A stretch of 64,000 nt of DNA, from NCBI GenBank assembly GCA_907165135.1, contig OU015569.1:4588001-4652000 (forward strand), written 5' to 3'. Each line of letters opens with the position of its first letter. Within the stretch, counting starts at the first letter, position 1. Source of the DNA: Oikopleura dioica (taxonomy: Eukaryota; Animalia; Chordata). Under the pieces are notes generated by a model. The model did not search any database. It saw only the letters and a program-made list of their open reading frames with translations, and was not told the DNA's origin. Shown one piece after another: positions 1 through 29,534 of the stretch. The translations under genes and the position numbers were made by a program.

Positions 1-3000
1 GATATACTGGAGAAGCTCAAGAGTATTCAAAAGGTGAAGGAGAATGCGCGGGCAGTGGTCGAATTCCACGTTGTCAATCCTGACCTCATCTTCAGCATGA
101 CGCCCATCCCCAAGTCAATTAGCGTTTTTAATCTTGTTGAACGGTCGGCGGTAAAAGCGAGAAATCGTTACGGCTGGAAAACGAAGGATATTTCCAAGGG
201 TGAGGATGTTACAAAGATCTGGGCAGCGAACTTCAACTTGAATTTCCTGAAGAAGAACGGAATTCGCTGCGCGTTTGGCCGTTTCGACTCGGAACATAAT
301 AACTTTCACCTCCAACAGCGATTTTGCCTAAAGGTATGCCCCAAAAGGAAAGAAGGAGCATTTTCCAAACGAGAAAGCAGCCCTGCAATTAGTGATGCGC
401 TAATAGTAGAAACAGTCAGAAGTAAACTCATAAAGGATTTTCACTGCCCCATCTCGTTAGACAATGTGAACCAAATCAATTCCTCTTTTCTGAGCGGTAA
501 AATCTCCCAAGAAGGACTCGATTGGATCGAGTCCCTTGGTCAAAACCCCAAGAAATCACTGACAAAGCTCATCCTTTCCCCTGTTTCCAATATCTCTCAC
601 ATAAATCTCATTAGGTCCGATCGGGAATCGAACAAGAAGGGGAGGGAAGTGAAGAAAAAGGAGAAACTACTGGAGGACATTAAGAAAGGTAAAATCCCCA
701 ATTGCATTTATCCAGAAAACTTAATCAGCCCTAGTGAATTCGCCAAAGCAACAGTCTCCAACGCCCTTTTCCAAAAAATTGATCAAGCGCTTCATCACCC
801 AGCCCGACACCTCAAAAAGAGAAGAGTCGTGAAAGAAAAACCTCCACATGGATGTACACATTTCGAAAGCCCCTTTCTGCCCTGCATTGACAACCCGTCA
901 AACTCTGACATTCATAAACTGAATTCTTACTGCAAGGAACTGAACACATTTAATAAAAATAATGCTCGCAAACTAAATCTAATCAACATAAACCCAGGCA
1001 AAGCAAAGAGCACAGGAGAAACGCTACGACTAATCAGCAGCCAAAGTGATGAGACTGATTTATTCATGATCAACGAAATCAGGCTCGAAATGGACATCCT
1101 ACTCACATCCGATCTGTGGCCCGAAGGCTATACAGTCTATTCGCACAATGAAAACCCCCTGTACAGCACGGCCTACACGGCAATCATGACCAGGAACTAC
1201 AGCCTCAGCGATAGGGTAATCAGGCATTTCAGTTTCGGAATCTTTACAGGAGTCCATATCAGGAATGAACTCGATCAAGAAGTACTGATTGTGAGTGTCT
1301 ACAGACCGATTGCCAAACAAGATGACAGTTGCTTTTATAAAAAATATCATAACAATAACCAATTGATCTTTGTAGACTGGGTCAGAGAAGCGATCAAGAC
1401 TGCTGGTGATTTGAACCTGCCACTGGTTATTGGAGGCGACTGGAACCTTGATTTTGATGGACGGCCTCAAGACGACTGTGAACTTGTGGACCAACTCAAG
1501 GAAATCCTCAGTGGCTACACAGACATCTGCTCGACTAACACATTCTTCAGAGGTAACAGCAACTCGAGAATTGACCACATCTTCACAAAATCTATTCGAT
1601 TTCATAATTGCAGAAACTTACAGTGGCATAAAAAGCTATCCCTAGATGGCCACAGTGGACAAAGCTTCCAGTTCTACTTCCAAGTCCCGAAGCACAGGAT
1701 GAAGGTCGTCTTCAACAGGAAGCTTGATGAACCGGAACTCATCAAGAAAAAAGCCCTGGGTAAGTTTGATGCAATCTGGGATAGAATAAGGCTAACTGAA
1801 GAGGCGGAGGAGAAGGTAAACCTCATTTTCAACGAAACCCGCAAACTACTAATGAGTTGCTCGAAACCACAGGCAAGAATAGTGGAAGACAAGTTAGAAT
1901 TCACATACAAACAGAGCAAAGAGCAGGTTAGCTTCATTAATCTCAAAAACATCTGTAGGAATCTTCTCAAATCAGCGAACGACCGGGAAAAAGATGAACT
2001 CAAGAGGCTCCTTTCCAAAGTGGGAAGCGTAATCGCTAAAATCGAGGTGAGAGACAAAAAAAGAACAAGACAGAAATTATCTCTTAGAGCAACCGATGAC
2101 AAAAATGCCGTATGGGACATCTTCAACAAAGAATGTAAACCGAATCAAGTATGGGATGTGGACAGGACCTACACCCCGAATGAACTAGCTGACAAAGTCA
2201 CAAAACTACAGGAATCAACTGCCTCAGACAGATGGCTAAATGAGCCTCTAAATCGGAACCTACCAAGCGACATGATGGAATTCTTCCCCTACTGCTTTAA
2301 TGGAGAAAACAAACACCCGTCAATTCTACACAAATTCAACAACCTAAAAGACTCGACAAAAGGCTGGTCTGGTGTAAACAAAACATTCTTGGACGCGCTA
2401 CCACTGGCATTTCTCCGCATCTTCCTCTTGCTTCCGATCTCAACCTGCCTGGAGAATGGAATCTACCCAGAAAGCCTCAAAACGAGCCGCATCACTATCC
2501 TGCCGAAGAAGAACAAAGGAATTCGCCCAATAGCTATAGGGGAAGTTCTCACATCTGTACTTGAAAAAGTGATCAAAGGAAGCCTCAACCAATTCCTCGA
2601 ATGTGTCGGTGCGTTACCTGATGCCCAAGCAGGATTTAGAAGTGCAATGAGCTGTGGCACAAGTCTCTTCGAGGTAATCAAATTCAACGAATGCGCTTAT
2701 ACGGAAGGCAACTCCTGCTCCACAACCTTCCTTGACGCGAAAAATGCTTTTGGATCCTTGGGGCATAAATCTCTAGTAAATATTTTAAAATTCTTTTTCA
2801 AGGGAAGAGCCCTAAAGCTCCTAAGCGATTCTCTTCATAGATTTTTCGTAGTAAATAGCAATGGGTTCTACTCAACCAGAAGAAGCGGCTCCCCGCACGG
2901 AGTACCGCAAGGTGGAAGCCTATCCCCTTCGCTTTTCTGCCTATATGTTTCGCAAATAACTTCCATTTTCAGTGATACTCCCGCAGTCAAGGTAATCCTC

Positions 3001-4329
3001 TTTGCTGACGATACCTGCGTCCTTTGCAAAGGAAAATCCCAATTAGAAATGGCCAGGATCACAAATGAAGCAATTAACAAGATATCGATAACCTTCAAAT
3101 CAATGGGCCTGGAGCTGGTCCCACAAAAAACCCATATTCTAGTAACATCTCCAGCAAAAACAAGAAATTACGGGCGGGACTTAGAGTTCAACCTCAATGG
3201 CACTATTCTTAAACCCTGCTCGTCAGCAAAATACCTCGGCTCGACCATAGACACCATTAAAGGGCAACTCTCATTCGGAACCAACACTAAAAACATCCAT
3301 AAACGAATGAAAATATTGAATAGCAAGGTAAGCTGCATCATCGATACAATTAACCTATCCCAAACCAGCGAATTACTGAGGGCCACCTCCATGGGCACCT
3401 TTCAACACAACCTTCAAGTCACGCCCCCCCTCTCCATTGCAGAAACCGCGAAACTTCAAAGAACATACCACAATGGTCTAAGCGCCAAAATGAGCAGACG
3501 GTATGGAAACGAAAATAATCCTTCAGCTGATAAAAGGTTCGGAATGGATAGTAATAAATACGAAAGTGTAGTAAAACTCCTTAAAGCAACAAAGCAGCCA
3601 TCCTTAAGCGGAATCAAGATTAGATCGGTCCTTTGTCACATTAACAGCGTAATGACCAATGACAGATCCGAATCCCAATGCAACTTCCTTTGTGAAAACT
3701 CGATTTTTATAATTAATGGGAAAAACACGAACTTCAAACTCATTCCACTCTTTAGAGAACGAATGAAACTTAGGAAGGCCTCAACTCTCGACGGACTTAA
3801 TCTTTCTTCGCTTAAAGCTGGAATCAAGGTGAATAGGAAGATGCTGTTTGCGGAGATTTTTCTAAGCCTGCTGTTCAACTTCAATCATATCTCTTATGCC
3901 ATTAAACCAAATAGGAACACTGCCAAAGGTAGGTGTAAATCGATGATCTGGCCGCTGTTTGCAGCAGATTGGATAGCTGATCTGCCGGTGGATGTAAGAA
4001 ACTGGACCCTTCTAGAGGGAAGAAAATCCGACATTAAGCGTTATCTTAAAGGTTTGCATCTGCATTTGGAAAGAATGGTCTTCTGCAACGATTGTCTCAT
4101 CAAAAAGTACGAACCCTGCGTTCATAAAGCAAAAAGTATATATTCTATCTCCTGCGAAGCGCTGTTTCAATGTAACAAGCTACTCCCCAATCATATCTCT
4201 CCTCTTTCCAGACGCGAAGCTGGTATCAACGCCATCGTGCCATTCCATCATAACAGGGAACAACTGCTGGAGTTCATAAGTTCTCTTTGCATTTCCTTCT
4301 CTGAGCAAAGTCATTCTTTCGCTCTCTAA
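1..4329 (+). CDS. Non-LTR retrotransposon polyprotein: N-terminal extension + APE endonuclease + reverse transcriptase + C-terminal Cys motif (frame open off the left edge of the window)
   Basis: Frame 1 has no stop from base 1 to TAA at 4327-4329. APE motifs: LNLININPG (973), INEIR, GGDWN (1432), SRIDHIF, SLDGH. RT motifs: IRPIAI, QAGFR, FLDAKNAFGSL, GVPQGGSLSPSLFCLYV, FADD (3001-3012), KYLG. CNDC...H...C near 4084 resembles a LINE C-terminal knuckle. Confidence 0.95.
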   Translation, partial: DILEKLKSIQKVKENARAVVEFHVVNPDLIFSMTPIPKSISVFNLVERSAVKARNRYGWKTKDISKGEDVTKIWAANFNLNFLKKNGIRCAFGRFDSEHNNFHLQQRFCLKVCPKRKEGAFSKRESSPAISDALIVETVRSKLIKDFHCPISLDNVNQINSSFLSGKISQEGLDWIESLGQNPKKSLTKLILSPVSNISHINLIRSDRESNKKGREVKKKEKLLEDIKKGKIPNCIYPENLISPSEFAKATVSNALFQKIDQALHHPARHLKKRRVVKEKPPHGCTHFESPFLPCIDNPSNSDIHKLNSYCKELNTFNKNNARKLNLININPGKAKSTGETLRLISSQSDETDLFMINEIRLEMDILLTSDLWPEGYTVYSHNENPLYSTAYTAIMTRNYSLSDRVIRHFSFGIFTGVHIRNELDQEVLIVSVYRPIAKQDDSCFYKKYHNNNQLIFVDWVREAIKTAGDLNLPLVIGGDWNLDFDGRPQDDCELVDQLKEILSGYTDICSTNTFFRGNSNSRIDHIFTKSIRFHNCRNLQWHKKLSLDGHSGQSFQFYFQVPKHRMKVVFNRKLDEPELIKKKALGKFDAIWDRIRLTEEAEEKVNLIFNETRKLLMSCSKPQARIVEDKLEFTYKQSKEQVSFINLKNICRNLLKSANDREKDELKRLLSKVGSVIAKIEVRDKKRTRQKLSLRATDDKNAVWDIFNKECKPNQVWDVDRTYTPNELADKVTKLQESTASDRWLNEPLNRNLPSDMMEFFPYCFNGENKHPSILHKFNNLKDSTKGWSGVNKTFLDALPLAFLRIFLLLPISTCLENGIYPESLKTSRITILPKKNKGIRPIAIGEVLTSVLEKVIKGSLNQFLECVGALPDAQAGFRSAMSCGTSLFEVIKFNECAYTEGNSCSTTFLDAKNAFGSLGHKSLVNILKFFFKGRALKLLSDSLHRFFVVNSNGFYSTRRSGSPHGVPQGGSLSPSLFCLYVSQITSIFSDTPAVKVILFADDTCVLCKGKSQLEMARITNEAINKISITFKSMGLELVPQKTHILVTSPAKTRNYGRDLEFNLNGTILKPCSSAKYLGSTIDTIKGQLSFGTNTKNIHKRMKILNSKVSCIIDTINLSQTSELLRATSMGTFQHNLQVTPPLSIAETAKLQRTYHNGLSAKMSRRYGNENNPSADKRFGMDSNKYESVVKLLKATKQPSLSGIKIRSVLCHINSVMTNDRSESQCNFLCENSIFIINGKNTNFKLIPLFRERMKLRKASTLDGLNLSSLKAGIKVNRKMLFAEIFLSLLFNFNHISYAIKPNRNTAKGRCKSMIWPLFAADWIADLPVDVRNWTLLEGRKSDIKRYLKGLHLHLERMVFCNDCLIKKYEPCVHKAKSIYSISCEALFQCNKLLPNHISPLSRREAGINAIVPFHHNREQLLEFISSLCISFSEQSHSFAL

Positions 4330-4392
4330 CTGTCTCCAAGTCAATATCAACAACTGTACAACGAGACGCTTACTTTATCCAAGATGTTTTAG

Positions 4393-6581
4393 ATGAGTTT
4401 ATCGAAACTGGCGTTTGACGGCTGCGGCAGCTGGTCTAATGCCAAAAACTCCGAACCGAAGGTCTTCGGCTTCCTCAACTCGGTCCTGGATACAATCTAT
4501 GCGAGGGACATTGATGAATTAATGGAGTCAGCGAACTCTGAGCTTCGGTTAGTACGATAAGAACTGTTAAAGAAAGCAGGAGCCGCTGGCAAGCCATGGC
4601 ACCGAGCCTCACTCGCTGATCTAAAAATAAATAGTTGCCTGCCGAATTTCAAAAGCTTTTCAGACTGCTCGAGGATGTCTTGACAACCCTTGGGATTGAA
4701 CAACTTCTGAATAACAACAATGTCGGGACACTATTTCGCATCATGTTGGTCGATCTCTGGGTACTTGCAGTCAAGAATTGTATTCCCCCTTGCATGATCT
4801 TCACGTATTTGAAGATCTCGCCTGCTGGTGCCAAGAAGCAATTCCTCAGCGAAATTTGTGTCAAAAACGACGGGTTACTTCCGACCGTCTCTGACCTTCG
4901 TTTTAAAACTAAACTCTTGGTCCCAAGTGGTCTCATTCACACCAATCTTTTCTCTGAAGACATAGGCTTACCATCCAGCGAAGCTGCGATCAAATTCGTC
5001 CACCAGCTTAAATCACGATGCTCATGGGGTGAACTAATCAGTTATGTTGCCAAATTCGGAAACGACAAGGACTCCATAACGGAAGACGAAGTAGAAGAAA
5101 CGCTCTTGAGTTGGGTCAGTCAGCAGGAAAAGGATAACGTCCTACTCAGAAACATAGCTGACTGCATGACGAAAACTCTGGGAGGGGAAATTAACGATTC
5201 GAACTCCTTCGCTTTGTTCTCGGGCCCCTACTCTTACGCCAATGCATGCGCCTTCGACGGCTTGAAGAAGAGTGCTCCCTTCATGGCTGACGACGTAAAA
5301 GTGGAGCTAGTAAACGCAGCGGGGATCCCAGTCAATAACAGTATTCTGAACAAATGCAAAGCAAGGCATGGCCTCAGGGTCAACTGCCCTTTAATTTTCC
5401 ATCCACTTCGAATGTTCCACTTCAAGAATGATCGGGAACTGGTTGGCGCGGCTACCACCATTTATAACCACCTGGTCAGATCTCTTGGAAATGCTCTAGC
5501 AACAGCTCAGCTAAACTTCAAAGACGCTTATCTTGGAAGTAGCGCTATTGAAAACGCTGCACCTTCGGTCATGGAATTCTCCCTGGCCAAACTCACAACC
5601 AATCTTCTAGAAGCTTCGATCCTCACCACCCAAAACTCATTAAACGGAACGCGAGATCTGGTTGCGAAAAAATTCTCCCTCTTACTCACGGAGCACTGCA
5701 AAGAAGAGGTAACAATCGAAAAACTCGAGGAAGCGGAGATGGCCGAAGGCATTTCCACATGCTGGGCAACTTTCCTGCTAAACACGCTGCAAATTGGGAC
5801 AAAGGGCCTAAACTTTCTGGAAGTCATCGCGAATGAAAGAAACATCTCTCTGGCCAACTTACTACACAATTGTCTCGGAACATTCTTTTGGGGAAAAGGA
5901 AGCATCGGCCAACGACCCACTCCAGGCCCTCGTGGGATTCATCTGGAGAGGAATCAGGATGAACTTCAGGTTAACATCTACCTTGCCTTGAACCACCTGA
6001 CTGCCAACGGCGAAGAGGTGGAAAATATTATCTCCAATCTCTTTGACATTACCCCAAGAATGATCTTGAAAGAATTCAAGCTCTCAAAGAAAAGAAAAAG
6101 ACTTTCGAATGATTTGCTGCCACCCCTCTCCCCAGTGAAGACCAGCAAGTCCCTCAAATTTGCAGATGAAATGGACTCACTCATCCTAGCCGAACCGCTA
6201 GCACGAAATACCGCCGAGCAAGCTCCGATTGCTGGACGCAACAAGATTGGATCACCAAGGATGGGAATGTCAGAGACAACCAATTCGTCGCCACCAGGTC
6301 CATCAACCCAAAGCCTTCTCAAGCCAGACGCTAACAATGAGGAGGCGAGTGAATCAAAGAACTCCGTCTCAGCTGAAGATGAAAGCGCTGGACTCGAGGA
6401 CACTCCTTCCTCGCATGATGACAGCTTCTTGGACGAAGAAGAGCCCACGGGCGGAGTAACCTTCCACAAAGAATCCGCAGAAAGTTTGAGGATTAACCTA
6501 GCCGCCCTTTGCGCCGAGGACAAAGAAGTACCATCCAGTGAAACCCTCGGAAACCAGCCAGATCCACTCGACAAGAACTAA
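4393..6581 (+). CDS. Novel ~690-aa protein (ORF-A), predicted join(4393..4547,4664..6581); basic NLS-like patch and acidic low-complexity C-terminus
   Basis: TTTTAG directly precedes ATG 4393. A phase-2 GTTAGT...CTTTTCAG intron (4548-4663) joins the 5' exon in frame to the 648-aa ORF, giving ...ANSELRLLEDVLTTLG.... Total 2073 nt = 691 codons. KLSKKRKRLS and a D/E/S-rich tail are present. Confidence 0.7.
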
Positions 6582-6983
6582 AGCGAATGTTATGTCACGC
6601 TTCTCCCCATGTCAACTTCATCGGTAAAAGTTTCTAGCTAAGCAATTTCCCTCTTCTATCATGATATCACCCACGCAGTTCCTTCACCTGCAGTTCAAAT
6701 ACCAAATCAAGTCTTACTCACACACAGCTAAGTCAAATCATACTAATAAAAGTTGCGCTCGAAATCCTTTAACTAGAATCCCAGTAGTTCAAAACCATGA
6801 TGCTTTCAAGCCGCCCCACTGTTTCAAATAAAGCGCCAAAATAAATTAACTGTAATTCTGTCCAACTCTTTTCCCGAACCCTCTGCACTGCAAATATTTA
6901 ATCTTACTGCCAATAGACTCTAAAATCTCATTAAGCTCAGCCACCGGCATTAACCACAACACTTTTAGAAGCACCTGTGCACT

Positions 6984-7619
6984 ATGGCGAATCTTGGACA
7001 AGGGACACGTAACTCGGTGACATGGTCGCGCGAGGAATTCCGCACGCTAGCCACTGGCAACGCGGACCCGATAAATTGGCCCGATTTCTGGGAGTCATTA
7101 ATGATCGATTTGGATGAAAAAGAACGCGCAGCTCTCGCAAATAGTGGGGGCTCTGGCCAGCCAGCCTGCCCTCTCAAAGCTTGGCCTAATCAAGTAAATA
7201 AAGTCACCATCAATCTGACTAAAAGCACTGTCGAACTAATCGCCGACAAGGGCATGATCGCCTCTAAGGGTGATGAAGAGATCGTCTCCACAACTGTCTT
7301 TAGCAATGACAGCTTCCCACTTGTTGACCGAATCAACCTCAAGGATGCGAAAGACAATAACGCTTGGTGGAGAACCAAAGTCAGAGCAGTCATTGGCCAG
7401 GCTGAGCAGAATCTCCGTGAAAGGCTCACCCTAGTGAACCTAATAATAGAAGCCGAGGACAAGAAATGGTCCATCAAGAAACTCAATGATTTGGCTGGCA
7501 CTATGAATGTCCTCCCAACGCGAATCTCACCCGATCAAGCTGCAATGCTCATGGATATCTCGAAAGCCCCTGGCCGGCCTCTTCAGGTAATCTTGCCTCA
7601 CGAATCTGACCCAAATTGA
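6984..7619 (+). CDS. Novel 211-aa protein
   Basis: Intact ATG-to-stop ORF, Trp-containing and globular-looking. TTAAC...ACTTTTAG acceptor lies 15 nt upstream of the ATG. No family recognised. Confidence 0.7.
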   Translation: MANLGQGTRNSVTWSREEFRTLATGNADPINWPDFWESLMIDLDEKERAALANSGGSGQPACPLKAWPNQVNKVTINLTKSTVELIADKGMIASKGDEEIVSTTVFSNDSFPLVDRINLKDAKDNNAWWRTKVRAVIGQAEQNLRERLTLVNLIIEAEDKKWSIKKLNDLAGTMNVLPTRISPDQAAMLMDISKAPGRPLQVILPHESDPN

Positions 7620-8033
7620 TTTGACATAGCCTCCCCAACCCCTAGATGTTGAGGCCCTCCATGCGAAATGGCGACAGTAGAAAGCTCCTCGAATCGACAA
7701 AAGGATCTGCACCACTAAAGTATTCTCATCTACCCCGAACACACTGCACTCTCCTCTAGCGACTAACTGGCGCAGCCTAACGAACATCTCCAACTGAAAC
7801 TGAGTTAAATCCAACTGACCCCCTGTCCAAGTTTTACTGCATCTCGCATCGTCCGCTAGTCAAGCAAATTCACTTATTCTGGAGCATCTCATCAAGATAA
7901 CCCTGACAATCTCCTATGCCTCCCTACCTACCCTTTAAATTTGAAACTGGAAGATCCACACCCCTGAACACCGACCTTAACATTCACTCTTTATAGATTT
8001 CTGACGTCCGGATTCCGGAACACAACGGGAGTA

Positions 8034-8339
8034 ATGAGCGGAAACCTGTGCCAACTACTGAATCATATGCGATGTCGCATCTGCACATTCATCATGGACG
8101 ATTCTCGGAGATCGGAAATTGCCATATTCCCGTGTGGCCACAGTAAAATCTGTAAGATATGCCTGGAAAAGCTGAGCAACTGCCCCATCTGCAGAGGCGA
8201 AGTGCAGGGCTCTCTCAAGCTGATAAATGATTTCGGAACACAAGGGGAGATGGGAAGAATTCTCGATGGACTCGAATTGGACTTGCTGAAGGATGAAACC
8301 AAAGAAAGAATCGGCGACAAGCATGGTCCAGGATTTTAA
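8034..8339 (+). CDS. Small C3HC4 RING-finger protein (IAP/MGRN-like RING spacing), putative E3 ligase
   Basis: CRIC-x16-CGH-x2-C-x2-C-x6-CPICR pattern. TCTTTATAG acceptor lies 37 nt upstream. Confidence 0.85.
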   Translation: MSGNLCQLLNHMRCRICTFIMDDSRRSEIAIFPCGHSKICKICLEKLSNCPICRGEVQGSLKLINDFGTQGEMGRILDGLELDLLKDETKERIGDKHGPGF

Positions 8340-8600
8340 CAACACCCACTTCAGAAACGGCCAACTCACCCGCTAGCGACTTTGAGCTCACCCAAATTCA
8401 ATTCTCATCTACCCAGTCACGGCAAAAAAATCTTCCCCGCTCACCGACATCGTTAACAAACCCTCCTCCTGACTCTAATTTTGACCATCCAGAACGAACC
8501 CGTCAACTGTCCATCTCCTTCAATAAATCTGCACTGAATTAACAACTCCTGATAAGATGCTGACCTTACTCTAACCCTTTAGACTGAAATCAATCTGGAC

Positions 8601-9884
8601 ATGATCACAGAAAACATCTCACGCTCACCAGTTGAATTAAAGCTCTGGATCAGTGCCACGTGCCTCACTCTCTTTCACAATGGGGGCTGCAGCTTCTTAC
8701 AAGAAATGAATTACCTCGCCAGCTATCTCCAGATGCAAGCAAGGGCAGAAGGCATTGTAGTCCCTCAAAGTCACCAGCTCGGGATAGTCTTCATGGTGCA
8801 AAACTTAAAACAGATCAACTCCTGCATCAATAATCTGCACTCACCTGACTACCTGGACAGAGTGATCATCTGTTTCCCGGCGGCTAAAGAATTCATGATC
8901 CTCAATGAAATGGAGCTGAATAGCCCAGATATCAAACACCGACTACACCACACGATGTTTATGCCAAGCGGTCTGATTCACACATTACGGAAACAACAAC
9001 CGTTTAATCCGCCAGAAAGTGAAGTATCCTCTTGGGAGCACAGGTGGAAAATAATCCTTGAAGGCACCGACCCACTAGCGCGAGAGCTGTACTGGGAGTA
9101 TTTCGGGCTAAATAGCCTCACTCAGGAAAACACTGAATCCGCCTTCAAATCGCTCCTCTGGGCGAGTGAACTCAACGTGAAAGCATTATGGAACCTAATT
9201 GAAAGTGGTCGCAAAGTGAAGGTAGTAACCACGACGGGAATGGAGTCACTTCAAACGGATCCCAAACCTTGCAAGGCTGAAGCCAACATCACCGGAACTA
9301 GCAAAATCAAAGCGCGAATCATCATCCCAGGTCAGTGTTCCTATGAGCTTTGTTGGAAGCCAAGAAGACCACTCCTTAAAAGAGACCATCAAATTGATGA
9401 ATGGCTCGACCAAAAAGCCTTCATAAAGATGGAAGCATGGACGAACCGGAACTTTCTAACACACGAGCGGCTCCAATCACTAGACGCAGAGGTGCAGTCA
9501 ATGGACATCAATGCCACTCCAATGCTGGGCCTAGAGAAACGCCCGAGAATGTTATCGTTTGATGAACTCAACCTCATCAAGGATGTCTGGTTCAGAAGAT
9601 GGCAGAATGCTGATCTGTGGAACCCCAACTACTCTCTTACAAAGATTCTGGACACCTCAACTCTCAAATTGTGGAACTGTCTACATCGGATCCTAATTCT
9701 TGAGTTGGAGGAAGACCTCCAAAAGCGCGGCAATAGTTTGGCGACAATGATGAACCTGTACTCGATCTCCAAATGCTTGGAAGTCGTCAATGAATGCGGA
9801 AAAGAACTGAGAACAATTAGCGGCTCAGGCGGGAGTTCTAACTTGATTAACTTAACATCACATTTCCTGTCAGTCGTTTTCTAA
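8601..9884 (+). CDS. Novel 427-aa protein (ORF-B), probable paralogue of the ORF-A N-terminal domain
   Basis: Intact ORF. CTAACCCTTTAG acceptor lies 18 nt upstream. Shares PSGLIHT and a preceding P-A-x-K...L-x-E segment with ORF-A. Confidence 0.8.
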   Translation: MITENISRSPVELKLWISATCLTLFHNGGCSFLQEMNYLASYLQMQARAEGIVVPQSHQLGIVFMVQNLKQINSCINNLHSPDYLDRVIICFPAAKEFMILNEMELNSPDIKHRLHHTMFMPSGLIHTLRKQQPFNPPESEVSSWEHRWKIILEGTDPLARELYWEYFGLNSLTQENTESAFKSLLWASELNVKALWNLIESGRKVKVVTTTGMESLQTDPKPCKAEANITGTSKIKARIIIPGQCSYELCWKPRRPLLKRDHQIDEWLDQKAFIKMEAWTNRNFLTHERLQSLDAEVQSMDINATPMLGLEKRPRMLSFDELNLIKDVWFRRWQNADLWNPNYSLTKILDTSTLKLWNCLHRILILELEEDLQKRGNSLATMMNLYSISKCLEVVNECGKELRTISGSGGSSNLINLTSHFLSVVF

Positions 9885-9982
9885 CAAACGTAGAGTTCTT
9901 GAGGAAAATTAATTCCTTAGAATTGTTATCTCTCGATAAGAGAAGTACCTTATCTTGCAGCTAATTCATTCAAGGTCCGAAA

Positions 9983-10483
9983 ATGATCAACTCTGAAAAA
10001 GCAAGTCTGGGAAGACTAAACGAAGCGCCAAAACTCCATCTTGAAGCCGCAAAGATTTTGAAAAAAGCGATTTCCAAAACCAACAGCTCCAACTCCGACC
10101 TCCTGATTAACCAAATAGATGGTGGGGCGTCAACTCTAGCCATAGTCCAAAGAAGAAACCAATTAAAAGCCCTCTTTCCGGGTCGCATCAGCACCCAAAC
10201 AAATGGCACTATCTCACCAGAAGTTAGTGAAACTAACCCAATAGAATGGGCTGCGAAAATCCTCACTAGACGGGGGAAACCCTTATGGAAAATCACTAAA
10301 GTGGAATCGACGACTATTCTCACCAAGCAATGTGGATTCCAATGCCGGAAGAACAAATTGGGATGTTTTGGTGCCTCACTAGCGCTGATATCTCCGGACC
10401 TGCGACTTGCACATAAAAGCTGTGAATCCTACTGCTCGACAGGTGAAGAGGAAATGGTCACGAAATTGGAGAACGATGAGTAA
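9983..10483 (+). CDS. Novel 166-aa protein with Cys/His-rich C-terminal half
   Basis: Intact ORF containing QCGFQCRKNKLGC...AHKSCESYC. Acceptor candidates TCTTGCAG (9960) and CATTCAAG (9974) lie upstream of the ATG. Confidence 0.65.
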   Translation: MINSEKASLGRLNEAPKLHLEAAKILKKAISKTNSSNSDLLINQIDGGASTLAIVQRRNQLKALFPGRISTQTNGTISPEVSETNPIEWAAKILTRRGKPLWKITKVESTTILTKQCGFQCRKNKLGCFGASLALISPDLRLAHKSCESYCSTGEEEMVTKLENDE

Positions 10484-10810
10484 CACACAATACGATAACG
10501 CTGCTGAAGCCGGGCTGGAACCCGAAAGATCGACCTAACTTACATTACTTCCTTAATTCCTGCATTTCCGCCTCTTTCAACTTACTATACTCTTACTACT
10601 TGTTTGCCCAGTTAATGTGGAACTAAGATTAAACTTTCTTGCGAACCGAATACACCACTCAAATGTCTTTACTCTTCCTATGGCTCGTGAACCTTGAGTT
10701 TGAAATGCTGAACTAATAGTGTCAAGAAAATGCATAATCCTACTCAATGTTAATGTTCTGGTTTGCTACTTGATCTTGCAAAGGCTTGGCTTGTTATATT
10801 TTCTTTCGAG

Positions 10811-10841
10811 TTTATTGGGTTCTTCTTAGCTTTTCAATAAA
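10811..10841. terminator. Opposed polyadenylation signals of two convergent gene arrays
   Basis: TTTATT at 10811-10816 (AATAAA on the minus strand) and AATAAA at 10836-10841 (plus strand), in an AT-rich, ORF-free spacer where the strand bias flips. Confidence 0.55.
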
Positions 10842-10998
10842 ACGGCAGTTCTTGCATCAGGGAAACAGAGAACGCAAAAGAGGAGAAAGGTGAAGGGGGA
10901 TTGGACTGTTGAGAGGTGCAGGGTTCAGGAATGTTGTTTCAGTAGTTTTCGTGCAGGGTAGCGGAGTTGTGAAGGCGAGGTGAGGCGGAAGGGATGAG

Positions 10999-12022
10999 TC
11001 AGCACTCGAGGTCGAAGGAGCGCAACTTGGCGAGGAGAGCAAGTCGTTCAGCAGGCGTCATTGGAAGGACCAAGTTGGCTTTGAGGATCGCCAAGCGTGT
11101 AGCTGAAAATCACTGGTCAACAATTGAATTACTTCGCAAGCGGAAAGCTCCATCAAAAGTTTAACTTACAGTACTGGGCGATTCGGGCACACTGCTTTTG
11201 GAAGTTGTAACGCTTCTCATGAGATTCGGGGGAGTACCAGGTGTTCCAGGAGTCGTCGCATTCTTGGATCTGCAGGTCGATTGGGCAGCTCAGCATCTCC
11301 AGACCAAAGTGATGAAGCTTGACCTGAGAGCGAATGGAGGACCACTCGTCGAAAGAGTTCACCCCAAGATAAGTCCATCTTGGATCAGTCTGATTCCTGA
11401 AGGAAGGATTGACCAGGGCGTCGATGAGGAGATCCAAGTCGAACTCCGCGTTTTCGCAGACTTCTTTCCAGCATTTATTGAAGAAAAGTCGGGATCGAGG
11501 GGAGGAGTAGCTGACCGGAGCCTGGCAAAGATGCTGGGATACGTTGGTGCGGTAATCGGCTCCACAAATGATGTTGACGTTGGGGTTGTTCTTGAGCCAT
11601 CGTCGAAACTCACCCACAGTGAAAAGGTGACCCTTGCCGGTGCGGATGTTAATCGCACCATATTGTATGGCGAGCTCTGGGTTCACATTATTCTGAACCA
11701 GGGTGTTGATGTCCTCGGAGATGGCCAAGCCAAAAAGAGCGAAAACTCGCTGGCAAGGTGGAGGAGGAGGAGCAGCCGAGTTGGTGATCGTGACCAGTTC
11801 GCGCCAGATCGAAGTCATTTTGGCGGACATCTCAGCGAAGGTCTGGGCAGAGGTGTTGAGGAGGACGCTTTGTGAAGGGCTAAAGAGAAGGTGCCGGTAA
11901 AAGGGCGGGAGCTGGTTGTGCTCGAGGTCGTGATTCTGGAAGGGAGCGAGCTCCCCTTCGCGCCACTCCTCAGGGAAGTCACCGAGACAATTAGCATCGC
12001 CGAGAAGCTTGAAGTGAACCAT
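10999..12022 (-). CDS. Novel 318-aa protein, predicted complement(join(10999..11102,11170..12022))
   Basis: ATTTTAG acceptor lies 7 nt upstream of ATG 12022. A canonical 67-nt GTAAGT...TTTTCAG intron (11169-11103) replaces the ORF end with STRLAILKANLVLPMTPAERLALLAKLRSFDLEC*. Total 957 nt = 319 codons. Confidence 0.7.
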
Positions 12023-12145
12023 TCCGAATCTAAAATATATGAGGGTTAGAACCTGAATACTTCCAATCTAAGGCTAAATAGAACTCAAGAATTGAATAGT
12101 TCCCATTTAGGGATACATCATAAAGGAACAGGTGAATTAAGAAAC

Positions 12146-12328
12146 TTAGTAATCTGACAAGCGAAAGAGCGTCTGATGCAAAGGGAAACTGGTTAAAACA
12201 TAAGCTAAAGGACCAAAATCAACGAGGAGCATTTGACGAAACTCAGGAAATTGAATGGCGAGGGAAGCGAGGAAACTCAGCAGCAGTGAGACGATAATCG
12301 ATCGACTGGTCTGAATCAAATTCGTCAA
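12146..12328 (-). CDS. Possible small hydrophobic ORF or exon
   Basis: 60 codons containing SIIVSLLLSFLASLAIQF. No ATG start, so it would need splicing. Confidence 0.25.
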   Translation of the reverse strand: MTNLIQTSRSIIVSLLLSFLASLAIQFPEFRQMLLVDFGPLAYVLTSFPLHQTLFRLSDY

Positions 12329-12377
12329 AACAGCACTCTAGTGCTCTAACTAACCAGTATCCTATGGCGAAGCAGAT

Positions 12378-13181
12378 TTAGCGGCGAGGTGAGCATCTCC
12401 GTTGGGTCTGAGTGCCTCGGGAACGTCGAACTCGAGAAGTAGGTAATGGCTGAGTAGTAACCGCACCTTGATAAGAATATCTGCGGGGACCTAAGTAATT
12501 AAAGATAAGTATGGAAACTCGGAAACTGTAGCTCTCACCGGTCTGGGTTGCCTGATCGAGGTAATAACGCTCCGGAAAGAATCGTAGGGGTGCACTTAAT
12601 CGAGAACGTCTTGCATTTTCAGCCGATTGGAGTCGTAGGGCTCCGGGGGTGAATAACACCGTCTCTTCACGAGAATTCCTTGGTGTAGCTGATGCCCGGC
12701 CGGAAGCTGAACTTGACTCTTCCTCGTTGCTGTCGGAACAGGAAGAACTGGAAGAACTGGAAGAACTGGAAGAACTGGTAGAACTGGAAGAACTGGAAGA
12801 AGAAGACGAGGGCCTAAGTATCTGTTAAATTGGTGCTTCCCTTGACTGTACCGAATGGAAATCCAAGAGCCCCCACTAAAATAATATCCTCCAAACCCTC
12901 ATCTCTACTCACATTTGATGTCGCCGTCGATGAGCTAGAGGCATAATGCTAGCCCAACCGTTTTGAGCTGCATACTCAATACGATCTTCCCGGACCGAGT
13001 GGTATGGGCTACCATCGTAATGGATGACTCCAGGTGCAATGGCAGGATATCGCTCTGGAACAGCGCTCATAATGCCATACTGGCGGGCATACTCGAATCT
13101 CTGGCGCTCTGGTAATCGCAAAGTATCGAAGTGTGGAACTTGAGTAGTGGCTCGCTCATCATCATCGTCAGAAAAACACAT
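12378..13181 (-). CDS. Novel spliced gene (exon structure ambiguous) with an internal repeat and Arg-rich C-terminus
   Basis: CTTACAG acceptor lies 5 nt upstream of ATG 13181. GTGAGT donor at 12912. Several downstream acceptors are possible. An in-frame 48-nt GTGAG...TTACTTAG intron candidate lies near 12.49-12.54 kb. Confidence 0.45.
12741..12800. repeat. 9-bp tandem repeat (GGAAGAACT) x6 plus partial
   Basis: Read directly; one unit is the variant GGTAGAACT. Confidence 0.95.
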
Positions 13182-14624
13182 TTGATCTGTAAGTGTTTGC
13201 GGAGCAAGTGCGGAGCAAGTGCGATGATTCTGAAGGCTTCTGCCGATCCTGCTTTTCGTGGGCGCGTGGGCTGCTTAGCGCCACCGCTATGAGCCATTCA
13301 GAGTTGCGCGTGGACTCAGGTGAGAACTACTCACTGCTAATGATTCAGCTCATCTCGGTTCGATCCCTGCTCAACTCGGTACGACTTGCTAACTCATCTC
13401 AATGTCACAAAAACTCCCGGCCCTGCATTAACAACCTAAACCTGCTGAAAGAACGAGTTGACGGGGAGAACTGGAGCGGCTCAATCAGCAATAAGCTCTT
13501 TCACAGATCTCCTCGGATTCAATCAAATTAACGCAACATAAACTGTATTAGTATATTTCTTTTCGTAGTGGTCCAGAATCATATATGTATAACTTTATTA
13601 AAACTAATACAATCTATTCCTAAAGCGAACATAGTGGCATAATGAAGTCAAAAGGCACTCGCGATCCCCAATTCCTTCTTCAGTGCTGCGGCACTCCTCC
13701 TGCTCATTTGAAGCAAGGGTTAACTCTGCAAGGCCTGGTGCTAGGCAGAGTGGACTCACATTGCGGATTTGAGCTTTTTTCCTCCATGTCGGCGAGTGGT
13801 CTACGGACCCGACCCGCTTCTACGCTGCAGTCGGTCTGCTGTGGTGGTTGGATGGTTGGACTGGTATTTCTCCGCTCATTTCGCCTGGACCGGTCCACAA
13901 TTCTGACGCCCTGTGCTTTAACACATTCCTTCTGTATCTTTTACTGCTCGTACATCGTTAATGGTTCTTTTTACCTGCAAATAAATTATAATGAATTGAA
14001 AAAATTGAAACGGAAAATGAGTTTGGCTATTGGTATTTATCAGGCGGCGCGTGCGCTTGATCTTATGGCGTTTTGTAACGAGAAACGCATTTCCCCAAAC
14101 AGCCCCAGACTCGCCCTTTGATTATCATAGGCGTAGACTTTGACCCGTAAATTTCAAAGATTTCGATAAACACCCTTCCCAAACAAATATTTAAAAAGAT
14201 CAGTACTAAACGCGCCGCCGGAAAATATACTAATTCGCAAGCAAACGCATTAATTAGGCGCCAAAAACAAAAATACGATTTCTGCGATTTGCTCCGCCGC
14301 CTGCATCAGAAAATTATTGGACGGGGGGCTCTGATCAATCATTCCGTGTCACTTACTCTTTCGTAAATCAAGAAGATGTGGCACATTGTCCAGCTGCAAC
14401 AGAAAATTAGACCCCTAAATGAAATATCATCGCGCTGAATTCCCCTTTCAAACAGACACCTTTTCAATTATTCACACATCGGATTATTTTCGGCTCTAAC
14501 TTATGAGCAGATGATGATCAACTATTTGGTAGCAAAATTACAATGCACCGATTTTTTAGCTTGAAGAAAAAACGGCAAGCCGCTTGCGGCTTCATGAAGA
14601 AATAAACACAGGAAAGCCGCGCTT

Positions 14625-14650
14625 TAACCTAACACTAACCCTAACCCTAA
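14625..14650. repeat. Short degenerate telomere-like (TAACCC)n tract
   Basis: TAACC TAACAC TAACCC TAACCC TAA. Confidence 0.7.
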
Positions 14651-17511
14651 TTTTCTGTAAAAAAAATGATTGATTTGACTTTAGAAAAGAAAGATGAATT
14701 ATCGCAACTTTGGGTGCAACTAAGAAAGACCCGAATGTAATAATTAAAAAGATAATTGTAGAAATAAGAAATGGGAAACGAGTTGACTCGGGCTTGTCAT
14801 ACTTCTGACCGGTTAATGGTAGTATTTTGGCGAATTACGTGTCACGTGTTTGATTTATTTGCCGAAATTAGATGAAAGTAGCATCACGTGATCGCCCTTT
14901 CTCACCCGTTTTGATCTTTTTATGATTTTTGGATTTTCGCGATTTTCTTGAGGCCGGAAATTTCGACACCCTTTCTCACGTGTCCATAAAGCCAGCCGAA
15001 GCACCGCGACGTCCGATCGACAAATTTACCTTTGAAGTCGCCACGAATTACAAAAAAAAAACTACTTTTGCAATTTCAAGCTGCTTCGTTTCGAGCAAAG
15101 GCCATTGTGGGCAAATAAGGGCTTTATCCAGTTATGTATTTAATTGGTCTGTATTTGGCGGTGCAAAGGTGGTCGTATCATCTCAAGTTGAGGTGTAATT
15201 ACTGGAGAGGCAGGTGATGATATTGTAAAATCACGCTGGCGGTGGCGGAGCCTCAAGAAATACTCACTCGGTGATAACCTTTTCCAGTGGCACCAAATTA
15301 AGCCGGACGACAGCCGCTGCATATTCGATAACGGATAATATTGCTCCACCGTCTGACACTGCCTCCAAAAACAATTTGTCATTATCTGTCAAAAATATTC
15401 TGCAAATTTGCATACACCAGGTGAAACCTTTTTGCAATAATCACCATCATTCTTACACCGCCGAAATTTTCTTGATATGATTTAATTCGAAGACGATACA
15501 AACAACTAATGAAGCGAAAGAAACAAAATAGAGTCAATCAGTTGACAGAAAAAAAGAATAATCAAGGAAGCGTATTTTGGAAGAAATTTGTTATTGAGTG
15601 TCTACTTAATCAAAAGTTGCGTTTTTCTAATTTTGAATATTTTTGGTCAAAGAGGCTGGATGTCCAGCGCGGGGCTGGGCCGACATTTTAATGCATATCC
15701 GAAAATGATTTTGCGATCGAGGCCCGCCCAGCTAAGAATGTCAATCAATGAATATACAATCCAGGGAGCTTCCACTCGCACAACAAATCGTCTAGGCTCA
15801 GTACAAGGGACATACATCGCCAAGCTGATTTTCCAACGGACTTTTCTTTCTTCCAACATTTTGATCTTATAAACATGCCCCTCTAATGTCTTCTTAGAAA
15901 ATTTCATCGTCAGAAAGTCTGCTCGAAATTATACAAAATCAGCCTCATTTGAGCAAGTTTTAGAAGGGCATATTTCTAGTTGTGTTTTGTTGAGGGAGCG
16001 GATTTCCATTATATGTGTTTATATATTTGGCCTCGGTGGTTGATAAATTCAAATCTGCAACAATGTGCCTCGCAAAGCCGCTTATCTTCCATTTTGCATA
16101 AATCGTTTATTTGAGCCTTTTATATTATTTGTTTTATGCGAGTATTATGAATTATATTGGGAAAGTGTGAGATTCGAACTGCTGCGACAGATTGGCGGGC
16201 GGCGCGCAACTAATATTTAGCAGTTACTGAATTTAATAAGCTTAGTCCGTTTGTTGTGAGCCTCGATGCCAACTCAAGTCAATCGAGAATCAATCTTGAG
16301 AAAGAATAGATCCGGCTACTGTTCTAGCGGCGAGCGAGGAGCCGGCAAACAAGAAATCTTTGAATCGCCAGTTTATGTTCGATTACTTGCCTTCTGCTCG
16401 CCTCGCTAGAATTATGATTCAAGCTTATTTTCGACCTTTGATAGGTTCTTGTGACCTTTGAGTCTCATTCTCATCTTTTATCCTGAGCTAGCGTCTCAGC
16501 TGCGTTGTCGCGCCCGGCTATCGCCTAATTCGAACAAGCTCAGCTGCTTCCCACTCTCTGTAAAAGCACATTGACGACAAAACGGATAACACCATTTCTT
16601 CCGCTACACCTGCTTAGCCTTCCTCTAGCAAAAAAAAAGACAGAAAACGCGATAATTTCAAAAAGAAAATTTTCAATTTTGAAATCAACTGAATAAAAAA
16701 ATAGTTGTTTTATTAGCATCTGATCCAGATAGTAATGTAGTAGCAAGCTTTCGCTTAACGAAGAGTTTGAGGTGCGTAACACAGCTGAAAATAAATGGTA
16801 TAATTGATGACATGTTTCTATCAAGTGGGAATTTACCTCGTTTCTTTGCCTTTCGGACTTGCTACTTCCAAGAGCAAGAAGTGAATGAAACTTATTCAAC
16901 AACATTGGCCGCTGAGGCCTAGTTCTAGAAGCGATTTGGATGTTACTGACTGTCTCTCGATGAGGAGGACAATAAAATGCGCTTTCTGAGAGCTGAGTTG
17001 TCGGTGTTAGTAAGCATGATGTGAAGCGACTCGTAAAGGTCGTATATTTGAATCAAAGGTCGGTTAATACGCGCATGTCACTCAATTCTTGAGATAGTAG
17101 GTAGATCAGCCTAAGACCTGCCGGTGACATTTAGCCTATATGGAATGCTACGACTGACACCGACACTCACCTTTCAAAATGCTGGCAAAAAGAGTTACTT
17201 ACAAAAGTAGATTTACATCTGTTTTTTATTTGTTCTAGAAAAGTCATTACATACTGCAATATAACTTAGTTATAAATTAAACAAAGAAACGGAAATTTGT
17301 TGCGTTAGTAAATGTGCGACTATGATACGCTACATAGAAGGTAGCAATTAGGATGTTTCGCTAGTTAGACGAAGCACTAGCTTTATCGGCCACAAAGGGA
17401 TTCAATCTCATAAGTGCCCTATCACGGAGGAATGTATTTTGAGGTTTTTGGAAAATGGGAAAAGGAATTTATTATCAAGCAAACAGGTGTGGATAACAGC
17501 TAGGGATGATT

Positions 17512-18193
<682 letters not shown>

Positions 18194-27400: not shown

Positions 27401-29534
27401 GATTAACACATTTGAGTGTGGATTAATAAGCAATAAAACATCTTATCGAACATATTTGACGAATAAATTAAGGACCACAAGGCGCACAAGACTCTTTCAA
27501 GTTCATGGAGCTGGATCTACATTTCGAAGTCGATACGGAAAGCGCTCATGACTGGTCGGAAGCTGATATCCACCAGATCTGGAAAACAATTCTAAAGAAG
27601 ATTAGCTTCCCAAACGTCGAGACTATAAAAATTTCTCCACCGAGAAAGGTTATTTTTAAACCAATATTCATCACTCAGATTCTTAGATATCTTTGCATTC
27701 AAACGCAATGTCAGCACAGTTGGACATTGAGTTCGAGAATGAGGTCAAGAATGGAAAGAAGATTTTTGACGCAATTCTAACGGAGCTCGGATTAGATTCG
27801 CTCAATCGAACTATCCGCGAGATTGACTCTGAAGTCTTCATTTATGTTAAAAAAAGAAGCTCGTCTTTTGAGCTTCTCAAAGAGCTTAAAAATATCGAGC
27901 CAGGTACAGTGTCAATCCATTTTTTCATAACGTGATTCGATAAGCTCCAAAAATGACTGAGATGAAGACGACTACAGCTTCTACAGATTTCTCAACCTAC
28001 ACAAGCGAGACAACAGCAGCAAAAAAAGATCGATTCAGTACATTATCACTTGCAGAGATGACAACAACTGCCCCTTTTTACAAAAAGAGTGAGCAATTTG
28101 ACGTCATTATTGAAGGCAGCGGCGAAATGGAGGACACTTTTATCTCCGAAAATGATCCACTCGTATTCGATAATTTGGAAAACGATGGTCTCAGAACGAC
28201 ACAGATCACATTTTCAGACGATTTTGATCTTTTCGAAGATGATGGAGAGGTCGTTTTTAAAAAACTCGCTACGGAAGCCATAATCACCACAACAATTCCT
28301 ACGACAACGACAATACGGTCTACAATCTTGGAAGAGATAACTACTCAAAAAGTCAGTGCGAACGATCCCTTAGGCTTCGTTGGAGAAGAAGAAGAAGTCG
28401 TTGATGATGCCTTTATCGAAGTGCCCGGTGTTTACGAAAGCGGGGATTCTAGTGGCGACTTTAGCGCTGATTTTAGTGGTGAATCAAGTGGGCAGGAAAT
28501 CGACGATGTTGTTCTCATTGAAAACAGTGGTGAAGGCTCGGGACTGGTCGAAGAGATGGTGAGAGGTTTCCTGGAAACAATTTTTATTAACATTTTTCAG
28601 TTTTTAATCACGATGCAAGACACTGAAAACGACCAAATAACCACACCTCAACCTGGTGAGTCTTTTGAAACATCGTTGATTCCTGAGAATTCTCCATCAA
28701 TAATTACGAACACGGCTAAAACAATCGAAACATCAAACACTACGAGTTCGCCATCGTCTAGCACGTCAACCAATTCTATGACAAATGATTACATAAACAC
28801 TACTTCCGCTCCGAGGCACTCTTCATTTACGACTACAGTTGCTATGGCATCTCCATCGGAACAAGTGATATCTGAATTGGAGTCTTCTGGAGACATTTAT
28901 TACGACGAGGTTTCAGATGACGACGAGATCTCTTCTTCTAAGGAATGCAGCTGCAAACCCCAGGATCTTCTCGAATCAAGTCTCTTTGTCGACTACATGG
29001 AGAAAATGCATGCTAGCTACAGAAAAGAGCTCAACTCTCTTGTAAATGGAATTAATTTGTTACATCAAGAGGTAGAATTATTCAAATTGAAAACAAAAAT
29101 AAATAATTTTTTAAAGATTGACCATCTGAAGTTACAGCTGGAAGTAGCATCCAGCACTCCAGTCGATTCAAAGGCGGCTACGCTGGCGATCATGAGGGTA
29201 AGTTTCTCCAACTAAAAGCATAAAAATTATTTCTTCCAAAGCATCACGTGATGAAGTACCACGATCCAACGAAAGCACCTTACCCCTATCATAACATCGT
29301 CGGACCTCCAGGAATCCCAGGGCAGCCCGGTCCGCCTGGTCGTCAAGGACCCCGTGGATATCCTGGAGTTCAAGGTCCTCCTGGAAATCCTGGCCCTCAA
29401 GGACCAACTGGAGAAAAGTAAGATGTCAAATTAGGGGCGGAGTAAGCATTTCTTTTAGGGGTGATTTAGGCGATCCTGGCTTCGGAAACGTTCAAAACTT
29501 CCCGAAATCCGACTGGCCGACCTACAATGTATAA
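21476..29534 (+). CDS. Large multi-exon ECM protein: FN3, vWA, FN3, vWA, S/T mucin tract, EGF repeats, Ser-Gly sites, coiled coil, short C-terminal collagen (Gly-X-Y) domain
   Basis: FN3 (VKLRWSPP...[12 protein letters not shown]); vWA MIDAS-like motifs DNSWSMG and DQSWSVG; Thr/Ser tract 24.4-26.2 kb; EGF Cys patterns 26.3-26.8 kb; EASGSGD motifs; [22 protein letters not shown]... at 29.30-29.49 kb; stop 29532-29534. The 5' exon was not found. Confidence 0.85.

Follow-up and report, generated by a model that had tools for sequence, protein, structure and literature searches.

Does a reverse transcriptase gene that is followed on the same strand by a string of orphan genes head a single, very large mobile element, or is it an ordinary retroelement lying next to host genes? 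The question is raised by positions 4,588,001–4,652,000 of the record OU015569.1 from the Okinawa assembly of the chordate Oikopleura dioica (GCA_907165135.1; OKI2018_I69 in PMC8008620); this stretch of 64,000 nucleotides (nt) is hereafter the window, with nt 1 corresponding to position 4,588,001 of the record. An initial annotation, made from the letters of the window, proposed that an open reading frame (ORF) with apurinic/apyrimidinic endonuclease (APE) and reverse transcriptase (RT) domains and five downstream ORFs form one element longer than 10 kb, possibly longer than 13.5 kb. Comparison with related loci indicates that the region from nt 1 to about nt 14,025 is probably the 3' 14 kb of one APE+RT retroelement of the long interspersed nuclear element (LINE) type, lacking long terminal repeats (LTRs), at least 17 kb in length and belonging to an Oikopleura-specific clade that is probably Odin. 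This part of the element comprises a sense array of genes, an intron-bearing antisense gene and a 3'-terminal block. It carries about six extra genes, including one for a RING-finger protein and the backward-facing gene with introns, a number far above the LINE norm.

The analysis employs the Okinawa locus sequence from window position –3016 to 17,619 (L007) and six related loci of Bergen O. dioica (L001–L005 and L008), two of which were extended (L006 extends L002, and L009 extends L004). The architecture was derived from an all-against-all comparison of ORFs combined with profile searches, and the far (3') end was read in four elements, namely the window copy, L002/L006, L004/L009 and L008. 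The Okinawa locus is internal to the chromosome, 4.59 Mb into the 12.96-Mb scaffold OU015569.1.

The ORF at the left edge of the window (nt 1–4329, plus strand) represents the 3' portion, 1442 codons long, of an ORF of 1808 codons whose start lies 1097 nt beyond the left edge. The description of this ORF as intact holds for the APE domain (approximately nt 1057–1593, Pfam Exo_endo_phos, E-value 5e-6), the RT domain (approximately nt 2503–3249, RVT_1, 2e-27) and the catalytic motif (F/Y)xDD, here FADD (approximately nt 3001–3012); the 5' part of the ORF lies outside the window, the frame being still open at nt 1. The FADD motif is present in the window copy and in the four relatives examined for it (L001, L002, L005 and L008). 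With a predicted APE located N-terminally to the RT in one ORF, and with FADD, this protein is of the APE-type LINE kind. The nearest RT proteins all come from Bergen O. dioica, with 42–48% identity over the searched APE-RT region (E-values down to 1e-227) and 36–44% over the whole ORF; the matches outside Oikopleura have E-values of 1e-23 or worse and at most 29% identity over partial length. Contrary to the initial proposal, the RT is not the head of the element, given that it is preceded by another large ORF, denoted UP, which lies upstream of the window, runs off the start of L007 and matches the Bergen UP proteins with E-values of 1e-49 to 1e-57. In Bergen, UP is 1100–1500 amino acids (aa) long, and the APE-RT protein of about 1900 aa overlaps or abuts it in another frame. 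Pfam searches detect no match for UP or for the N-terminal part of the RT ORF, and none of the usual ORF1 domains is found in UP.

Odin non-LTR retrotransposons of Oikopleura were reportedly described by Volff et al. in 2004, and to our knowledge Odin is the only non-LTR group reported from this animal. The name "LINE/Odin" is used in the assembly paper (PMC8008620). The elements analyzed here share with Odin the APE+RT polyprotein and the host, and probably belong to that clade. The literature searched, which did not cover the original Odin description, contains no mention of a multi-gene structure of Odin-like elements.

Evidence that the downstream genes belong with the RT comes from the Bergen relatives, which are dispersed over several scaffolds or sites and are flanked by differing host genes. 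Five of the six loci (UP is missing from L004) have in common the order UP, APE-RT, X, ORF-A, with X of about 300 aa and A of 600–780 aa. Four of the six loci continue with a small RING ORF recognized by Pfam, the strongly conserved ORF Z of 123 aa and, on the opposite strand, gene M; L005 shows only UP, RT and M. The L004 locus lacks UP along with the first approximately 115 profile positions of the RT ORF (about 150–260 codons by blastp) and retains X, A, Z, RING, M and the 3' block, so that by its layout it looks like a 5'-truncated LINE copy. No Pfam match is detected for X, Y, Z or M. The predicted recurrence of the RT and the downstream ORFs in a fixed order at several loci is therefore borne out for ORF-A, which is found at five other dispersed O. 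dioica loci, and for the RING ORF, found at four, and is not borne out for the remaining three downstream ORFs, which have no homologue anywhere. No relative was seen to end within a few hundred base pairs of the RT stop, the outcome that was named beforehand as speaking against a single element.

ORF-A begins after a 63-nt spacer (nt 4330–4392) in which TTTTAG, a putative splice acceptor-like sequence, directly precedes the ATG. The gene consists of two plus-strand exons, nt 4393–4547 (51 codons and 2 nt) and nt 4664–6581, split by a 116-nt GT-AG intron, nt 4548–4663 (gttagt ... ttttcag). Exon 1 and the long ORF that opens at nt 4635 are in different frames; removal of nt 4548–4663 restores both the frame and the exact 14-residue gap between two motifs conserved in the intronless Bergen A proteins. 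The profile of Bergen A matches exon 1 at profile positions 17–58 (E-value 3e-7) and exon 2 with an E-value of 4e-41. In a tblastn search, exon 2 matches sequence 3' of the RT in both L001 and L002, with E-values of 1e-21 to 1e-26; a word-seeded homology search with the same exon gives no match. Exon 2 encodes a conserved, mostly helical N-terminal part of approximately 470 aa, a KKRKR motif and an acidic, serine-rich tail. Neither Pfam nor a PDB profile search started with the A alignment yields a match for this protein, and an AlphaFold2 model from a 5-sequence alignment is poor, with a predicted local distance difference test score (pLDDT) of 37.

The groups (L001,L003) and (L002,L008) are supported in each of the maximum-likelihood trees of RT, UP and A, in which the window copy branches outside those from Bergen; in the RT tree, the window RT is outside the L001–L004/L008 group and inside L005. 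The congruence of the three trees implies that A accompanied the RT while these lineages diversified. Between the lineages, synonymous sites have reached saturation, so that the ratio of non-synonymous to synonymous substitution rates (dN/dS) is not computable for most pairs, and the ORFs are still open; for Z, dN/dS is 0.13. The RING and Z genes of L001 (19876–20727) and L002 (21094–22078) are 75–81% identical in protein and 77% identical in DNA sequence, whereas the RTs of these elements are only 40% identical and no other DNA similarity is detected between them. This pattern suggests either module exchange between lineages or a much stronger constraint on this module.

Downstream of ORF-A, the window contains four more ORFs on the plus strand: B211 (nt 6984–7619, 211 aa, annotated at NCBI as P0044), C101 (nt 8034–8339, 101 aa), D427 (nt 8601–9884, 427 aa, annotated at NCBI as P0045) and E166 (nt 9983–10483, 166 aa, unannotated and the weakest call). 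The translations of B211 and D427 agree with the annotated proteins at every residue. All ORFs of the initial annotation, beginning with the APE-RT ORF that ends at nt 4329 and its successor starting at nt 4393, are thus recovered at the proposed places and on the plus strand, and the spacers that follow APE-RT, A, B211, RING and D427 are 63, 402, 414, 261 and 98 nt long, respectively. This four-ORF array exceeds chance: among 2000 shuffles of nt 6582–10483, an ORF of at least 211 aa appears in 0.1% and one of at least 166 aa in 0.85%, and neither an ORF of at least 427 aa nor four ORFs of at least 101 aa ever appear. In a codon-usage test, trained either on RT and A or on the host genes of the window, the own frame of each ORF ranks top of the six, and this is still the case for E166. 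The C/A-rich look that these ORFs were said to share with the RT is confirmed as an excess of C over G and of A over T that continues unbroken over ORFs and spacers to approximately 10.8 kb, reverses from there to approximately 13.2 kb and then vanishes; the GC content drops from approximately 0.47 to approximately 0.38–0.40 between 13.8 and 14.4 kb. A repeat scan of the window likewise upholds the observation that neither a tandem repeat nor an A-run follows the RT stop. Long direct repeats and terminal repeats are not found in the window, and Rfam and tRNA scans of it are empty.

C101 is the only one of these four ORFs with a Pfam match (zf-C3HC4_3, E-value 5e-9); among the sense ORFs of the window, Pfam detects RVT_1 and Exo_endo_phos in the first ORF, the RING finger in C101 and nothing in the others. 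This protein shows 29–39% identity to the RING ORFs of four Bergen elements, with which it shares the motifs E[IL]A[IL]xCGH and CPxCR. The Cys/His columns of the RING are invariant in the alignment with these four proteins and follow the C3HC4 pattern, and a profile built from the Bergen RINGs has C101 as its top match in the window (E-value 7e-4). To judge from this domain, C101 is likely to be an E3 ubiquitin ligase, perhaps one that acts on a host factor.

B211, D427 and E166 are orphans, with no homologue in the Bergen elements or in any database searched; for D427, this includes 5.8 billion proteins, and no orthologue of it exists in the annotated Bergen proteome. B211 is located between A and RING, both of which are conserved in the related elements. 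Profile and profile-profile comparisons of B211, D427, E166 and the antisense ORF of the window with Bergen X, Z and M reveal nothing significant, and X, Z and M themselves are not detectable in the window. A single-sequence AlphaFold2 model of D427 is poor (pLDDT 37). The heptapeptide PSGLIHT occurs in both D427 and ORF-A, about equally far from the N-terminus, and the local alignment of the two scores z=3.5 over shuffles; hhalign finds no significant similarity between them. An old duplication inside the element may account for this likeness, although the link is only suggestive. Bergen X carries a related motif, (V/I)LPSALI.

The reversal of the skew coincides with an antisense multi-exon gene (nt 10,999–13,181, minus strand; annotated as 410 aa, largest exon ORF at nt 11,153–12,022), which is called in L007 and which, like the intron of ORF-A, is absent from the initial annotation. 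Pfam gives no match for the antisense ORFs of the window, and the gene corresponds in position, though not in any detected sequence similarity, to the antisense genes found in the Bergen elements. Bergen gene M is a multi-exon gene of approximately 4.5 kb with canonical small introns, encoded opposite to the intronless sense genes; an example of such an intron, from L001, is gtgagt...T14ag. An exhaustive HMMER search with an M exon retrieves only Oikopleura-like fragments and the L002 protein. The L008 element lacks RING, Z and M and has other, small antisense genes instead. Two paralogous small antisense ORFs that occupy the place of M in this element (L008 19853–22242) each have an MG(G)N start and a hydrophobic segment, features suggestive of myristoylated membrane proteins. 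In the window, the start of the antisense gene is separated from the 3' block by a spacer of approximately 760 nt (nt 13,182–13,940), which presumably contains the antisense promoter; the matching spacers in L004/L009, L002/L006 and L008 are approximately 830–930 nt long. The distal and antisense genes may be lineage-specific, swappable cargo, and A and RING long-standing accessory genes.

The far boundary of the element is marked by a 3'-terminal block that consists of TGCYCAGCTT(A)GCTGTTAATG, a short gap and CTGCAAATAAA, followed directly by an A-rich simple repeat. In all four elements in which this end was read, the block, with its AATAAA, occurs once, on the sense strand, approximately 760–930 nt past the start of the antisense gene. 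In the window, the block core spans nt 13,941–13,985, with CTGCAAATAAA at nt 13,975–13,985 and AATAAA at nt 13,980, and the A-rich, ATGAA-like tail extends to approximately nt 14,025, the presumed 3' end of the element. The tails differ among the copies: (ATGAA)4 in L002, (GAAAT)6.8 in L008, CAAA/CAA repeats in L004, and ATGAA/TTGAAA-like repeats in the window. The 11-mer CTGCAAATAAA is expected 0.07 times per window, and when a model is derived solely from the three Bergen blocks, its best match in the window is this site (E-value 0.017). A scan of one metagenome with the block returns no match. The remaining non-coding DNA has diverged beyond recognition between the elements, so the retention of the block argues that it is a conserved cis element, and its form, a polyadenylation signal with an A-rich repeat tail, is that of a LINE-type 3' end. 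Because the block lies beyond the antisense gene, B211, RING, D427, E166 and the antisense gene itself would all fall inside one unit of at least 17 kb. The proposal of a single element longer than 10 kb, possibly longer than 13.5 kb, is therefore supported, with the block at 13.94–14.02 kb bracketing B211, D427 and E166.

In L008, a candidate target-site duplication (TSD) of 14–15 bp is formed by TTACACGAAAAAAT, right after the tail, and TTACGACGAAAAAAT, found 92 nt ahead of the UP ORF; should the pair be a TSD, the L008 element would measure 16.6 kb. L001 is estimated at approximately 19 kb and L002 at approximately 23 kb, while the window copy, the 5' end of which lies beyond L007, has a length of at least 17.0 kb. 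Three other candidate 3' ends were rejected: a telomere-type repeat at nt 14,628–14,650 of the window, which is absent from the Bergen loci; an A14 run in L001, which is the pyrimidine tract of an antisense intron; and an A14 run after ORF-A in L008, where the conserved 3' block is found 3.9 kb further on. The telomere-type repeat is (CCTAAC)3.8, that is, CCCTAA, 23 nt in length; it is located approximately 600 nt past the 3' block, is expected 0.11 times by chance and is probably outside the element. The A14 run of L008 (L008 19200–19270), shortly past the end of ORF-A, is preceded by an AATAAA at a distance of 52 nt and is possibly an internal polyadenylation site.

The arrangement of the genes suggests how such an element might be expressed and propagated. 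A single long sense transcript would run from a 5' promoter to the AATAAA at nt 13,980 and would serve for the translation of UP and APE-RT. The distal sense ORFs could be made translatable by host spliced-leader trans-splicing at pyrimidine-AG sites before their ATGs or, alternatively, could be transcribed from internal promoters. The antisense gene would be driven by its own promoter. Beginning at the A-rich tail, target-primed reverse transcription would then copy the unspliced full-length RNA at a nicked target site, and the antisense introns would persist, since in the sense RNA they do not count as introns. A stringent pyrimidine-AG site within 45 nt before the ATG is found for 7 of the 21 distal ORFs, compared with a 6.7% background that includes coding sequence (p=3e-4). 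Operons are described as widespread in O. dioica (10.64898/2025.12.04.692336); as for the alternative, in some classes of the Tor elements of this species, env has an extra internal promoter (PMC4402516).

Several observations weigh against a single mobile element. B211, D427, E166 and the antisense gene of the window have no counterparts, and their membership rests on their position between conserved parts. The leave-one-out support for the 3' block of the window is modest (E-value 0.017), the candidate TSD of L008 is imperfect, is confined to a single locus and was identified post hoc, and TSD searches for L002 and L004 found none. The acceptor-site enrichment is soft because its background includes coding sequence. 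The sense-strand intron of ORF-A would be no less expected in a resident gene than in a mobile one. The Okinawa element appears to exist as a single copy, the annotation contains one copy per Bergen lineage, and near-identical copies turned up in neither the Okinawa nor the Bergen genome, so that recent transposition is undocumented. According to the assembly paper, LINE/Odin elements are almost absent from OKI2018_I69 (PMC8008620).

The few copies and the ORF-A intron would also fit an immobile or domesticated Okinawa descendant, that is, a resident single-copy gene cluster that derives from a multi-gene retroelement, is kept by host selection and no longer transposes. We regard this scenario as unlikely, although it is the most credible of the alternatives: besides the near-absence of LINE/Odin from OKI2018_I69 (PMC8008620) and the spliceosomal-type intron of ORF-A, which the Bergen copies lack, it is consistent with B211 and D427 each forming a one-member cluster from one contig, with an RT search that brings up no other Odin-like RT (787–2504 aa) of the Okinawa annotation, and with every ORF being intact despite the lack of close copies. 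However, a domesticated accessory cluster would have no need for intact APE and RT motifs and long UP and RT ORFs; the LINE-like 3' end is retained here, and the Bergen lineages are likewise low-copy with intact ORFs, yet are found at unrelated loci. Another possibility is that an ordinary LINE, made up of UP, RT and perhaps A, happens to lie beside unrelated host genes (B211, RING, D427, E166 and the antisense gene), for example, those of a host operon. Co-oriented genes are tightly packed in O. dioica, RING fingers are common in hosts, and B211, D427 and E166 lack counterparts in the Bergen elements; nevertheless, this explanation is already disfavoured and appears improbable, considering that in four Bergen elements A is likewise followed by a RING ORF, which has the same private motifs, and that the 3' block is distal to every one of these genes, both in the window and in three Bergen elements. 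It also leaves unexplained why no tail or repeat follows RT or A in the window, why four consecutive intronless ORFs have the strand skew of the RT, and why the annotated Bergen proteome contains no orthologue of D427. Least probable, to the point that we give it very little credence, is a composite of another class, i.e., a large DNA-based or virus-like element, or a set of nested insertions, that merely contains a LINE. The size of 17–23 kb, the genes on both strands and the distal content that varies by lineage would suit such an entity, whereas Pfam reveals no transposase, integrase, capsid or polymerase domain besides APE and RT in any ORF, the window lacks terminal repeats, and the combination of intronless sense genes, intron-bearing antisense genes and an AATAAA with an A-rich tail at one end only fits an RNA intermediate. 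A single multi-gene retroelement thus remains the probable interpretation of the locus.

Conventional LINEs (L1, I, CR1, R2 and others) are 4–8 kb long, possess one or two ORFs, end soon after the RT and are regarded as minimal elements. The elements described here resemble them in the APE-RT with FADD, the upstream ORF that overlaps or abuts the RT ORF in another frame, the AATAAA with an A-rich 3' repeat, the candidate TSD and the putative 5'-truncated copy. They differ in that the RT stop and the 3' end are approximately 10 kb apart, with at least five further genes in between, including an intron-bearing one on the antisense strand, and in that UP is 1100–1500 aa long and lacks the usual ORF1 domains. 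The giant multi-gene retroelements known to us are the Terminons, which have another RT, lack an endonuclease and sit at telomeres. Terminons are Athena/Penelope-like elements of bdelloid rotifers, up to 40 kb in size, with one RT and many extra ORFs that vary by family and include recognizable enzymes such as GDSL and DEDDy (PMC5408684). The element in the window is similar to Terminons in size and gene number; however, its RT is of the APE-LINE type rather than Penelope-like, its extra ORFs are orphans and a RING protein, and its locus is chromosome-internal, with only the 23-nt CCCTAA-type repeat, absent from the Bergen loci, nearby. It is accordingly not a Terminon. Tor elements, which are LTR retrotransposons from O. 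dioica, have env as a third gene downstream of pol (PMC4402516), and so share with the element the host and an extra gene 3' of pol, but they are Ty3/gypsy-like, have LTRs and a single envelope-type gene, and show no sequence relation to the window ORFs. In its co-oriented ORFs, short spacers and pyrimidine-AG before ATGs, the array is also reminiscent of the O. dioica operons that are processed by spliced-leader trans-splicing, from which it differs by being linked to an RT and recurring as a unit at unrelated loci.

A broader generalization, to which we assign somewhat less than even chances, is that an Oikopleura-specific clade of APE-type LINEs has expanded to multi-gene retroelements of 17–23 kb with a fixed order, in which UP and APE-RT precede an array of intronless accessory genes on the sense strand (among them A and RING), an exchangeable antisense cargo gene with its introns retained, and a conserved block for 3' recognition, and that their polycistronic genomes are expressed via the host operon and trans-splicing machinery, as LINE counterparts of the rotifer Terminons. 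If this is the case, a LINE lineage would regularly carry at least 10 kb of extra genes on both strands, target-primed reverse transcription would be capable of propagating very long, gene-rich templates, and host operons with trans-splicing would have let a retroelement turn polycistronic. Such elements would also provide a natural example of a LINE that shuttles antisense, intron-containing genes. The conserved RING and Z proteins are candidates for element-encoded manipulation of host pathways.

There is also a bearing on annotation. In the public Okinawa annotation, part of UP, APE-RT and ORF-A are fused into one 2835-aa model (L007 1–9598, to nt 6581 of the window), and RING and E166 are unannotated; in the Bergen annotation, the stretches 3' of the RT appear as gene-free gaps of up to 10 kb. 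Elements of this kind would thus appear as fused giant "genes" or as gene-free gaps, and would be a source of orphan genes in a compact genome, the O. dioica genome being famous for its compaction. Past the 3' end of the L002 element, the flank (L006 2116–7011) contains dense tandem repeats with 41-, 59- and 91-nt units that overlap annotated "genes", and the respective gene models may be spurious.

Elsewhere in the window, two long plus-strand ORFs without a Pfam match, of 688 and 420 aa, are located at nt 24,161–26,227 and nt 27,953–29,215, the former within the strongest A over T and C over G skew of the window outside the element. A second, unrelated retroelement occupies nt 51,701–54,543. 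It encodes a 614-aa protein on the minus strand (nt 52,382–54,226) with an RVT_1 match (E-value 3.7e-8) and is flanked by perfect 220-nt inverted repeats (nt 51,701–51,920 and 54,324–54,543). This element may be DIRS- or Penelope-like, and its identical arms suggest a recent insertion.

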